This document shows, piece by piece, positions 39,003 to 48,820 of a DNA stretch of 64,000 bases; position 1 is the first letter of the stretch; every line of letters starts with the position of its first letter. Made by a program: the position numbers and the translations under genes. Source of the stretch: Mantamonas sphyraenae STR306 (lineage: Eukaryota > Protista > CRuMs); NCBI GenBank assembly GCA_026936335.1, contig JAPMXV010000002.1:124001-188000 (forward strand), read 5' to 3'. The notes under the pieces were generated by a model. That model was not told where the DNA came from and searched no databases. It saw only the letters and a program-made list of their open reading frames with translations.

Positions 39003-42000
39003 TTACTCGGTGATCTGCTCGGCGGCACAGACGTAGCGCACGCCACGGAGGGTGACGATCTGACCCGGGTAGCACATGCGGCGCACCGACTTGGGGCACG
39101 TACGCATGGCAACGCGCGCAGAGACGAGGAACTTGCTCTTGAGCGTCTTCTCCACGGCGGCGGTCTTTTGGTCCTGGGCAAGCTGCATCTGCATCTTGAG
39201 CTCGTTGGCAAACTCGGACCACTTCTTGGGCAGCACCGACTTGAAGGTCGAGTCGAAGCGGCTCATGTAGCGCTCGATGCGGTCGATGCCCTGGTAGGCA
39301 AGGAAGCGCAGCTTGTGGGCGCGAATGACCACGTCGGCGGTCAGCTTCTCGCGCACGAGCTTGACGTACTCCTCGACGTTGTTCTCCAGCTGCATGAGCT
39401 GCTTGAGGATCTCGTCCTTGACGTACGACGGGTACGTGGGGTTGGCACGGTCCAGGCCGTCGTTGGCCTTCATGCGTGCCTCGCGCAGGGTGCGGCCCAC
39501 GTAGATCTGGAAGCGCTTGCCAAAGGCCTTGGTGCCGGCCTTGGTCATCTTGGCCATGTCGGCCTTGAGCTCGTCGTAGTCGTACACAATGTCCTTGATG
39601 GCCTGTGTGGTGCGCTGAGCCTTGGTGGCCTTGCGCAGGATGACGTCGAGCTTGAAGAGCTCCGTGGCCGCGGTCTTGAACTGTTCGCGCAGCTTCATCT
39701 CCTTGACGCTGACGACGTTCTTGACCTTGGGGCGCACGACCTTGGTGCCCTTGGGCAGGTGCTTGTTGAAGTAGGTGATCTCCTTCTCGATGGCAGCCTT
39801 CTCGGCGCCACGCTTGGCCTTCTCCTTGAGGGCGTTGGTGGAGCGCCACTGGCGCCACTTCTGCTTCCAGCCCTCGGTGATCTTGCCGCTGGTCTCGCTG
39901 AACGCCTTGGTGAAGCGGCCGAGGTGCACGGTCTTGCCCTGGTGCACAATCTTGCCAAACGACTCGACGGCCTTGTCCAGGGTGATCTTCTTGGCCTTGA
40001 AGGCGGCGCGCAGGGCCATTGCGTCCTTGAGCTTGTTGGTAAACTCGACGCCCCAGCTGTCCTTGAGCTTCTTCAGGGTGGCGCCGGCCACCTTGCCCGA
40101 GATCTTGCCCGTGACAAAGTCCTTCTTGACCTTGGCGAGCTGAGCGCGGCTCTTCTTCCACTGCTCGGCGGTCTCGCTGTTGCGGTGGAAGCGGAAGAAG
40201 CCCCAGCCCTTGCCGTTGTACTTCTTGACCTGCTCGGCGTACTCGAGGGGCGAGTCGTCGCCGCCGTTGCCGCCGAGGTCACGCTTGAGCTCGGCCAGCT
40301 TGAAGCGGTACGAGTTGAACATGGGCACGGCCTTGGGGTCGACGTGCGGCGAAGCGACGGCTGCGTCGAGGGCCTTCTTGATGTCGCCGAGGATCTTGGG
40401 CGACGGGTTGTAGCCCTGGTTGAGGACGCGACGCAGGTAGGCGTAGCGCTTGACCTCGTGCTTGTGGGCGTTCCTGAACACCACATACTTGGCCCAGAGG
40501 GCGGACCAGTGTGCGTTGACGGTGGCCTTGCCGCGGATGGTCATCTCGAGGCCGTGGAGACGGCGCGAAGTGTATCGCTTGGGGAACTTGCCGAGGACCT
40601 TGGCGCGGTGCTGGCGGAACTCCTTAAAGTTCTTGAACTGCCACTTGTACTTCTTCTCGCGGAAGCGCTTGTCCTTCTTGGCGACCTGATCGCGCATGGC
40701 AGTCCACAGCTTGTGGGCCTTCTCCATGTCGAGGTCGATGGCGCTCTCGGCACCCGTGGGGTTGAGCTTGAGTTGGTGCAGGTCCTTGGGCTTGGCGCAG
40801 GCGCAAGTGGGGCAGCCCGTGTTCTTGTCGTACGCATAACCGTACACGCAGTTGAGCTTGCAGGTAAACTTGGGGCAAGGCTTGAGCTGAGCGCCGGGCT
40901 TGCCGTACCACTTGGGCACGCCAAAGTTGCGCTGGTGGCCGTGGGTGGCGTTGACGAAACGTGTGCGCCACTTTCCGCGGAACCAGGTGCCCGGGAAGAA
41001 CGGGTAGAGGATCTCCTTGTTGTCTTCGAGGCCACGAGGGGCGTGGTTGGCCCACTTCTCAAACATGGGACCGTAGGCGGCGACCATCTTGCCAGCAAAG
41101 TTGGCGTCCGTCTGCATCTTCTTGTAGTTCTTGCGCAGGGTGGCGGCAGTGAAGGCGCGCTTGACACGCTGGGCCTTGCGCCAGGCGCGGTGGTCCGGGT
41201 TCTTGTAGCGCCAGGTGGCGTCGTGGTACATGAAGCGCCAGTAGCGGATAAAGGCCAGGCGCTGACGGCGCCAGCGCAGGGTGCGGCGACGGTAACGCAT
41301 GGCAGCCTTGCGTGCGGCGGCAGCGGCACGGGCCTTGGCACGGTAGGTGTTGAAGGCAGTGAAGATCTTGTGGAGCGAGACCTTGCAGGCGCGCAGGCGG
41401 TCCTGGATGGCGTTGGCCTGCTTGCGCTTGGCAGTGAGGGTCTTGGAGCCGGCCTCGGTGCCCTCGAGGGCCATGACGGCGCCGCGAGCCTTGTTGTACT
41501 GGTTGTTCAGCAGGCTGCACTTGGAGCGGCTGCGCCTGAGGACGGCGAGGCGCTTGGCGACGGCGTTCTTGAGCGCACGAAGCTGCTGCTTGTAGAGAAG
41601 CTTGGCGTTCTTGATGGCGTTGCGGTCCTGGCGGCGACGGATGCGCTGGCGCAGGGCGCGAGCCTTCTGCTTCTTGCGCAGAGCGGCCTTCTTCTTCTTG
41701 AGGGCGGCGAGGCGAGCGCGGCGCTTGGCACGGCGGGCGATGCCCTTGGCACGCTTCATGTCGTCGCGCTTGAGCTGCTTGGCGGCAGCGGCGCAACCGT
41801 GCTTCTGCGTGCCGCGCTTGCACTTGGCAAGGAAGCGACGCAGGCGGTTGTCATAGGAGCGGCGGTGACGACGCACGATGGCGACGTACTTGCGCGACTT
41901 GCGCTGCAGGGCCTTGACGCGCATGTTGATGCGTGCGTAGCGAGTGTTGTACACGCTGGCGCGGGTCTTGACGATCGACAGCTTGGCGTTGAACTTCTTG

Positions 42001-48000: not shown

Positions 48001-48820
48001 GGAAGCGAAGGGGGGGGAAATCGCACGAGGTGAGGATGCACGAAAGCGTCGGGCCAACCGTGTCAGCTTCTTGGCCACATATGAGGAGACACACAGAGAG
48101 GAACACGCAGCCACACGTGTCACGCAGCCACACGTGTATGCACGCGCGCGTCTCAGCCACGGTTCGGTGCGCAGCGGCACTTTGCGGACTTTGCGAAGCG
48201 CACGACGCGCAAAGGCGTGGAAAAAGCCCTCCCGCAAATTTCACACGCACGGCCCGCACTACCCGGCACACGCACGCACACACACACGCATCGGCCTATG
48301 GCGTGCGTTTGCTGCTCTGCTCACGCATGGTTGACCCACGGCGCGCCGCAGGCGCTGTGTGTGTGGCGAGAGACGCGTTTGGGGTCGAACGGAAACGAGG
48401 CGAAAAAAAGCGGCGGTGGCGATTCGAAAAAAAAAAGCACCCGCGCACACTCAGGCCGCACACAGGGCGCACACACGTGCAAAACCTACCCGACTCGTCA
48501 TCGTCGACCTTGCTGTCCGACTCGCTAGTCGACTCGCTGGTCTTTTGCGATGCCTCAGCGTCCGACTGGCTCTGCACAGAGGCCTCCACAGCGGCCGTCT
48601 TCTTCTCAAGAGCGACGCGCTGCTCCTCCAGGTCGCCTGCACTCTCGTCAGACGACGACACCTCCTCCAGCGACTGGTCCTCAGTGCTGTCGAGGTCGTT
48701 CAGCAGATTGTCAATCTGGGAAAGCACACCGACTTCCTCCAGATCGTCTGCAGCGGCAAAGCTGCTCGTGAATGTAATCACGAGCAACCCCACCAGGAAA
48801 AGAAAAGCCGATTTCTGCAT
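39003..48820 (-). CDS. Giant (~3107 aa) secreted, extremely basic Arg/Ala/Lys-rich repeat protein; exons 48820-48490 and 47995-39003
   Basis: Exon 1 encodes signal peptide [24 protein letters not shown] and an acidic segment. A phase-1 GTAGGT..CACAG intron joins it in frame to a 9-kb exon with strong codon bias (AAG, GCC, CGC, AAC, CTC). Confidence 0.88.
43713..43853. repeat. Perfect 9-bp tandem repeat (CTTGCGACC)x15 encoding (GRK)15 on the minus strand
   Basis: Read directly; no synonymous variation between units. Confidence 0.95.

Follow-up and report, generated by a model that had tools for sequence, protein, structure and literature searches.

A stretch of 64,000 nucleotides from Mantamonas sphyraenae STR306 (contig JAPMXV010000002.1), in the following referred to as the window, contains at positions 39003-48820 a locus in which both DNA strands are open over approximately 9-10 kb and much of the sequence is repetitive. 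The initial annotation had read this locus as the gene of a giant secreted polycationic precursor. The questions it raises are whether there is a real gene at all, and on which strand, whether its product is destined for secretion, and what a protein of such composition might do. As predicted from the genomic sequence, the locus is a genuine two-exon protein-coding gene on the minus strand, and the earlier observation holds. The evidence supports entry of the product into the secretory pathway as a predicted pre-pro-protein of ~3,107 residues. By layout, this predicted protein resembles known secreted polycationic pro-proteins; by sequence, it is an orphan. If it is made as predicted, a charge of ~+780 on ~3,100 residues would place it among the most highly charged secretory proteins known to us.

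Architecture of the Gene

The gene starts with the ATG at 48820 and terminates with the stop codon at 39005-39003, both on the minus strand and with exact coordinates. The two exons (Table 1), which were analyzed and searched separately, combine to 9,324 nt, equivalent to 3,107 codons plus the stop codon. The predicted exon junction is of phase 1 and restores the reading frame of exon 2, within which the first in-frame ATG is found only at residue ~302. The splice donor is G/GTAGGT at 48490/48489, the slash marking the exon border, and a polypyrimidine tract leads to the CAG acceptor at 47996/47995. A local reference is provided by the intron of the neighboring SYF1 gene, which is independently supported by strong Pfam matches on both sides of the frame break and which includes a GTAGGC donor, a CTGAC-like branch motif, a (CA)n run, and a CAG acceptor. 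Since the GTAGG donor is common to the SYF1 intron and the gene under study, the predicted junction fits the local splicing signals. The exon coordinates and the 48490/47995 junction of the initial annotation, being exact, phase-compatible, and in agreement with the local donor consensus, were retained.

The locus includes two very long overlapping open reading frames (ORFs), one of 3,012 codons on the minus strand (39003-48041) and one of 3,515 codons on the plus strand (38811-49358). The latter was considered as a gene and rejected, given its mirror-like antisense codon signature (G+C at first codon positions, GC1, 0.78) and the lack of any Pfam match; its translation is a string rich in Leu, Ala, Gly, Val, and Thr. 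It stays open because the minus-strand gene uses none of the codons TTA, CTA, and TCA, the reverse complements of the stop codons. A prokaryote-style gene caller could take this antisense ORF for a gene.

Codon usage in the minus frame sets the gene apart from its surroundings, as had been claimed from the start. The G+C content at third codon positions (GC3) is 0.82 overall and the effective number of codons (ENC) is 28-32, compared with 38-48 in eight neighboring genes; lysine is encoded by AAG in all 310 instances in exon 2. Among fourfold-degenerate codons, 75-86% end in C or T, as compared with 38-71% in the neighbors, with the shift being toward C/T-ending and away from G-ending codons. 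In the tract encoding the Arg/Ala region (47094-47951), GC3 drops to 0.43 with CGT and GCT as the main codons (75 and 74, resp.), while CGC and GCC are preferred in the remainder of the gene (39006-47093; GC3 0.84-0.92). The use of CGT and GCT in this tract may avoid DNA and RNA of nearly 100% G+C, while keeping to codons that are read by the same inosine-containing tRNAs. Since the shift is toward pyrimidine-ending codons rather than simply toward G+C, it looks like translational selection, and a bias of this strength suggests abundant synthesis of the protein.

The Predicted Pre-Pro-Protein

The N-terminus of the protein carries the signal peptide of the initial annotation, which was called by Kyte-Doolittle hydrophobicity and by eye. 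With a mean of 2.17 over 19 residues, as compared with a maximum of 0.87 in exon 2, it is the sole segment of the protein for which this mean exceeds 1.6. Neither a transmembrane segment nor a C-terminal anchor of the glycosylphosphatidylinositol type was found in the protein upon hydrophobicity scanning. The signal peptide is followed by the acidic propiece, for which 87 residues with 13 Asp, 14 Glu, 17 Ser, 4 Lys, and 1 Arg and an isoelectric point (pI) of 4.05 were determined.

What follows is of opposite character. The exon-2 product (2,996 residues, 349 kDa) has a pI of ~12 and a net charge of +779, resulting from 587 Arg and 310 Lys residues against 59 Asp and 59 Glu residues. The scarcity of acidic residues over some 1,400 positions, as originally described, amounts to 7 Asp and 1 Glu between residues 16 and 1400 of exon 2, including a run of 467 residues (432-898) devoid of either. 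A run of seven arginines opens this body and leads into an almost pure Arg/Ala region of ~285 residues, composed of ~40% Arg and ~50% Ala; the underlying DNA repeats are imperfect, with 65-75% matching. It is succeeded by the cationic repeats described below, by VRR-type repeats, and by a GRK tract, which had been counted as (GRK)15 and corresponds to (GRK)15.7. A match to the Collagen family (PF01391; 29.1 and 35.7 bits, cut-off 27.2) is due solely to this tract, which contains no proline and only positive charge; as a collagen triple helix would call for uninterrupted Gly-X-Y triplets that are either rich in Pro/Hyp or charge-paired, the tract is not treated as collagen here.

The ensuing ~820 residues are indeed rich in Lys, Arg, and Ala, with a net charge of +225 over the overlapping span 1430-2290 of exon 2 and a Gly plus Pro content of 2.6%; no Pfam match was obtained for this region. 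The long coiled coil of the initial annotation stays putative: a coiled coil would show a sustained heptad (a/d) periodicity, and the hydrophobic periodicity of residues 1470-2290 (3.5-3.6 residues) is modest (z = 4.3) and patchy in windows of 56 residues. The C-terminus is predicted to be mostly helical, in line with the initial annotation, albeit from a model of low confidence: AlphaFold2 without an alignment gave a mean predicted local distance difference test (pLDDT) score of 40 for the C-terminal 707 residues, of which only the secondary structure is usable. When the last 1,560 residues were compared with themselves by BLASTP, no repeats emerged.

The Cationic Repeat and Its Predicted Three-Helix Fold

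The most conspicuous portion of the protein is a tandem array of basic repeats with paired cysteines, whose number of about 18 is now confirmed as 18. Alignment of 17 of them yields a mean column identity of 39% with two invariant cysteine residues at positions 27 and 41. A profile built from these 17 repeats, the first repeat being left out, recovers all 18 copies, the omitted one with an E value of 6.6e-7 and the others with E values of 1e-12 to 1e-18; the same profile detects no copies elsewhere in the window. The repeats contain 7-10% Tyr, and their boundaries are stereotyped, often with an Asn at the end before a start of the type R/K-R-W/Y.

AlphaFold2 modeling based on the repeat alignment predicts with high confidence (pLDDT 94.1) that each module would fold as a three-helix bundle, the helices comprising residues 2-13, 17-33, and 35-55. 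In the model, Cys27 is located in helix 2 and Cys41 in helix 3, at similar distances on either side of the connecting turn, so placed that they could staple the bundle by a disulfide. None of the 18 repeats, when searched individually, matched a Pfam family, and the repeat profile had no match among PDB sequences at E <= 10. Comparison of the model with PDB structures by Foldseek gave nothing at E <= 0.001, the best hit being C5a with an E value of 4.4. The cationic three-helix repeat with its Cys pair is a previously undescribed module; with ~57 residues, a charge of ~+17, and one putative disulfide, it might serve as a building block for polyanion binding or coacervation.

The Antistasin Knot and the Search for Relatives

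A single portion of the protein is recognizable by sequence. Within the aromatic-rich segment, the antistasin-like motif turned out to be genuine: its six cysteines are intact with the exact spacing C-x4-C-x3-C-x11-C-x2-C-x-C, and the PF02822 score is 27.4 bits for the whole exon-2 protein and 32.8 bits for the 120-residue segment, both above the gathering cut-off of 21.2. Six-cysteine disulfide knots are typical of secreted proteins. The knot is 42-56% identical to modules of the antistasin-like protein P0002 of Naegleria lovaniensis (BLASTP, E 8e-11). Membership in the antistasin family pertains to this one module, that is, to 27 of ~3,107 residues, and not to the protein as a whole. In Naegleria, 86% of the antistasin-domain proteins possess signal peptides (PMC12482156), and hardly any occurrences of the domain are reported outside Metazoa, choanoflagellates, ichthyosporeans, Naegleria, and Willaertia (PMC12482156). 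The present gene adds another non-animal knot to a domain that is reportedly nearly restricted to Holozoa and Naegleria/Willaertia (PMC12482156).

Other relatives were sought in several collections. In a search of 1.84 billion representative proteins without restriction on length, the C-terminal 707 residues matched only antistasin modules, and among PDB sequences the C-terminal sequence had no match either, the antistasin knot aside. With 5.8 billion protein clusters, no relatives were detected among proteins of 1,650-5,240 residues for the exon-2 protein scored on residues 300-1370, nor among proteins of ~155-490 residues for a 281-residue piece covering five repeats. Scans of metagenome contigs of the Joint Genome Institute and of viral contigs were blank as well. 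Pfam searches with the exon-2 protein and its segments returned two families only, namely antistasin and Collagen. A self-match was also absent from the collections searched, implying that the genome is not represented there. In the literature, searched for sequence strings and for polyarginine and extrusome proteins, no description of such a protein was found. These searches support the view that the predicted protein belongs to no described family, with the antistasin knot as the only recognizable element; the absence of a recognized family, as noted initially, was thus borne out by sensitive homology searches in these collections.

Table 1: Positions, within the window, of the predicted gene, of its segments, and of the intron used as local splice reference.
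Feature	Position	Strand	Remarks
Exon 1	48820-48490	-	331 nt; 110-codon open stretch from ATG to donor
Predicted intron	47996..48489	-	494 nt, GT-AG
Exon 2	47995-39003	-	8,993 nt; 2,996 residues
Start codon and signal peptide	48752..48820	-	23 residues; from translation and hydrophobicity
Acidic Ser-rich pro-region	48490..48751	-	rest of exon 1; runs on 7 residues into exon 2
RRRRRRR	47952..47972	-	exon-2 residues 8-14; putative convertase role
Arg/Ala region	47094..47951	-	~285 residues, to about residue 300; ~40% R, ~50% A; net +110
18 tandem repeats	43947..47129	-	~57 residues each; exon-2 residues ~289-1349; two invariant Cys, ~+17 each
NPVRRVRK repeat and 11-residue repeat	43854..43958	-	from translation
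(GRK)15.7	43713..43853	-	perfect 9-nt tandem repeat, 100% matches by Tandem Repeats Finder
K/R/A-rich helix-prone region	41124..43586	-	~820 residues; from composition and periodicity
Aromatic-rich segment	40767-41126	-	120 residues; holds the antistasin knot
Antistasin-type six-Cys knot	40797..40877	-	27 residues; inside the aromatic-rich segment
C-terminal region and stop codon	39003..40766	-	587 residues, pI 10.2, predicted mostly helical
SYF1 intron	35394-35490	-	97 nt, phase 0; local splice reference

Proposed Function

Three independent features argue for secretory routing of the protein, namely, the signal peptide, the invariant Cys pairs in repeats of 39% identity, and the intact antistasin knot. 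Regarding the claim of a secreted polycationic precursor, the secretory routing, the acidic pro-region, and the polycationic body are retained; cleavage at RRRRRRR, high expression, and all of the proposed roles (extrusome or granule, coat, adhesive, prey killing, silica) stay conjecture. The scenario that explains the features best, and that is advanced tentatively, at slightly less than an even chance, is that of a secreted multivalent polycation which would condense a polyanion and function in a matrix, coat, or adhesive. Export is impeded when positive charges adjoin a signal sequence; therefore, the acidic stretch could act as a spacer that lets the chain start translocation before the poly-Arg emerges. 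In addition, the N-terminal Arg/Ala helix may be locally masked by the pro-region for as long as no protease has cut the latter off at or near the run of seven arginines. In each three-helix module, a Cys27-Cys41 disulfide would staple the bundle. The mature protein would act via electrostatics rather than catalysis. As an extended polycation with many binding sites, it could bind and condense nucleic acid, polyphosphate, acidic proteins, glycans that are acidic or sulfated, or anionic surfaces. A protein so charged would have to travel and be stored together with a polyanion, and it would most likely serve, much like a complex coacervate, as matrix or cement in an organelle of regulated secretion, in a cell coat, or in an adhesive. 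Multivalent Arg and Lys, the Tyr content of the repeats, and the folded, rod-like modules would all fit a role in condensing, cementing, or coacervating.

Several points weigh against this scenario. The gene model and its product are known from the genomic sequence alone, and the polyanion partner is hypothetical. The charge of the pro-region, ~-22, is far too small to neutralize +779; hence, a role of the pro-region as a spacer for translocation or topology and as a mask of nearby charge is more plausible than masking of the charge as a whole. The protein contains 246 dibasic sites, so that the arginine run is not a unique convertase site and a protease of the kexin/furin type would not be specific for it. 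For this genome, the link between codon bias and expression is an uncalibrated one, and strong bias is not seen in exon 1 (ENC 43; G at 45% of the fourfold-degenerate third positions). As no relatives were found, the scenario cannot draw support from evolutionary conservation. Finally, no entry of the protein collection exceeds 52% identity to the neighboring SYF1, and the cell biology of the organism (extrusomes, scales, theca, gliding) cannot be drawn on.

The main competitor, to which we assign a low though not negligible probability, sees in the protein a polyprotein precursor whose cationic peptides would kill microbes or prey. Once it is delivered to the phagosome or secreted, cleavage within the Asn-rich linkers or at basic sites would release 18 stapled modules and poly-Arg/Ala helices that permeabilize bacterial envelopes. 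The extreme Arg/Lys content, the amphipathic helices, and the stereotyped repeat boundaries with their frequent Asn before R/K-R-W/Y would agree with such a product, the strong codon bias would be fitting for a protein needed in bulk for feeding, and the combination of an acidic propiece with a toxic cationic product follows the logic of proMBP-1 (PMC11483036). The processing sites, however, are hypothetical: the boundary Asn is equally well explained by helix capping, and cutting at 246 dibasic sites could not be selective. Such a precursor would also leave half of the protein unexplained, from the helical region of 820 residues through the antistasin knot to the C-terminal 587 residues, and no similarity to known antimicrobial peptide families or saposin-like pore formers was seen in Pfam or among PDB sequences. 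Much less probable is a role in templating or scaffolding the deposition of mineral or polyphosphate (as silica scales, a lorica, or polyphosphate granules), in analogy to diatom silaffins. Polycations precipitate silica and polyphosphate, and a signal peptide combined with polybasic low-complexity tracts ((GRK)15, Arg/Ala, Lys-rich) would be in accordance with such a role. Silaffin/cingulin-type proteins, low-complexity families for which usable profiles do not exist, are biosilica-associated, modified peptides rich in Lys and Ser that are released at RXL sites; the present protein is rich in Arg, not in Lys/Ser, a silaffin-like KXXK/Ser pattern was not found, although no search aimed at it was made, and no silicon-transporter or related gene is among the genes of the window.

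The remaining two alternatives question the gene model itself. It is conceivable, albeit quite improbable, that exon 1 is an unrelated small ORF and that translation starts at the internal Met (exon-2 residue ~302), giving a huge basic protein that is not secreted and is located in the nucleus or nucleolus or bound to microtubules. Splicing is predicted only, the codon usage of exon 1 is ordinary, in contrast to that of exon 2, and very basic K/R/A repeats are typical of chromatin- and microtubule-binding proteins. Against this stand the phase-compatible junction with its local donor consensus, the 285-residue Arg/Ala tract, in which the CGY/GCN structure of the codons is preserved and which merges without a break into the domain that follows, and the invariant Cys pairs and the antistasin knot, which point to an oxidizing compartment. 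That the locus is non-functional, being either a runaway low-complexity expansion or pseudogene, or else occupied by the plus-strand ORF of 3,515 residues as the real gene, is hardly credible. The two open strands, the repetitiveness, and the lack of relatives would allow for it; yet the codon-position signal and the bias reside in the minus frame, the plus-strand ORF has an antisense signature and no domain, and its openness is accounted for by the missing TTA, CTA, and TCA codons. Moreover, the repeats have diverged to 39% identity and still keep both Cys residues and a foldable core, and the antistasin knot is intact.

Preference is, therefore, given to the secreted, polyanion-condensing polycation. 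A more far-reaching version of it, which we consider rather doubtful, holds that the protein founds a new class of giant polycationic proteins of secretory organelles or the extracellular matrix, in which a disulfide-stapled rod flanked by poly-Arg/Ala and (GRK)n condenses a polyanion (polyphosphate, acidic glycan, or DNA) in a secretory compartment, with its release driving rapid expansion, adhesion, or prey capture; the eukaryotic lineage concerned would be one without close relatives in the protein collections searched. The questions raised are how such a polycation would be translocated into the endoplasmic reticulum and trafficked, which polyanion balances it, and what the 18 modules build. 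Through this gene, a secretory organelle, coat, or adhesive of a eukaryotic lineage that has been little sampled may become accessible at the molecular level.

Genomic Context

As judged from the window, the genome has a G+C content of ~60% with few and short introns; neither a tRNA nor any Rfam family was detected in the 64 kb. The neighbors of the gene are ordinary eukaryotic genes and encode a dynein heavy chain (18842-33117), SYF1, Nup85, an M3 peptidase, Stk19, and leucine-rich-repeat and ephrin-receptor-like/transient receptor potential (TRP) proteins. From the dynein heavy chain, the source organism is considered to be flagellated. The best matches of SYF1 are from animals and Capsaspora at 44-52% identity, with none above 52% in the 5.8 billion protein clusters. 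Together with the reported distribution of the antistasin domain, this ranking gives a hint, though no proof, of a holozoan-like affinity. A metagenome scan with SYF1, by which a syntenic orthologue of the gene could have been caught, found nothing.

Adjacent to the start codon, an intergenic region of ~310 nt (48821-49131) with (CA)n/(GT)n runs separates the gene from a divergent Stk19-like gene on the plus strand, the probable ATG of which is near 49132; this region may be a shared bidirectional promoter. On the other side, between SYF1 and the 3' end of the gene and convergent with the latter, there is a 377-codon low-complexity ORF rich in Asn, Gly, and Gln (37382-38515, plus strand; GC3 0.68). 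The dynein heavy-chain frame breaks at ~23240-23260 on the minus strand, between the ORFs 23242-33117 and 18842-23245, with no intron signals; this reads as a single-base frameshift in the stalk region and is either an assembly indel, suggesting long-read errors, or a real lesion. Elsewhere on the minus strand, an ORF at 57180-61439 contains ephrin-receptor-like, DUF7630, and TRP-channel domains, and another at 61340-63610 includes Val/Ala/Gly/Thr-rich repeats and many N-x-S/T sequons with no Pfam match. The ORFs across 57180-63610 may form one very large membrane protein.

Comparison with Known Systems

Several known systems show partial likeness to the predicted protein. Characterized antistasins are small, Cys-rich serine-protease inhibitors with a reactive-site loop and, usually, tandem domains, as opposed to the single 27-residue module found here, for which inhibition would be putative at most. 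The saposin-like precursors of amoebapores and naegleriapores consist of ~80-residue modules with six Cys and the SapB fold, whereas the present repeats have two Cys and three predicted helices; no SapB match was obtained with Pfam for any of the 18 repeats. Similar in architecture are the staphylococcal protein A domains, the GA/FIVAR modules, and the spectrin-type repeats, in which three-helix bundles of ~55-60 residues are strung together into an extended rod, as the model would suggest for the present repeats. The latter differ by their charge of ~+17 and the conserved Cys pair, and no significant Pfam, PDB-sequence, or Foldseek match connects them.

Protamines and other sperm nuclear basic proteins share the long Arg-rich and Arg/Ala-rich tracts and the condensing of a polyanion; however, they are small, nuclear, and without a signal peptide, while the protein described here would comprise ~3,107 residues with a signal peptide, disulfide-type modules, and a knot of extracellular type. 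A parallel with respect to the order of elements is offered by proMBP-1 (PRG2) of eosinophils and similar granule pro-proteins; in proMBP-1, an acidic propiece precedes a basic granule protein and is believed to shield the cell while the protein is being transported (PMC11483036). Common to both are a signal peptide, an acidic propiece of ~90 residues, and a very basic mature part, which in proMBP-1 is stored in secretory granules. MBP-1, in contrast, is a C-type lectin domain of 117 residues with a net charge of +15, compared with 2,996 residues and a net charge of +779, which the propiece cannot balance. Neither Lectin_C nor another lectin family was detected in the exon-2 protein (Pfam, E <= 0.1); there is no relationship in sequence or fold, and only the layout is common.

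With regard to the proposed function, secreted cements offer an example. In the glue of the sandcastle worm, polycationic proteins are charge-balanced with polyanionic partners in secretory granules and form a coacervate cement (PMC11277488). Its proteins Pc1 and Pc4, as well as the mussel foot proteins, are, like the present one, secreted (here by prediction), very basic, Tyr-containing, and repetitive. There is no homology between them, and the partner and the chemistry of 3,4-dihydroxyphenylalanine (DOPA) are known only for the cement systems. Pc1, Pc4, and the mussel foot proteins are short, largely unfolded animal proteins rich in Gly, Lys, and Tyr, whereas the protein predicted here is Arg/Ala-rich and giant, would be built from helical modules, and is encoded in a protist-like genome.

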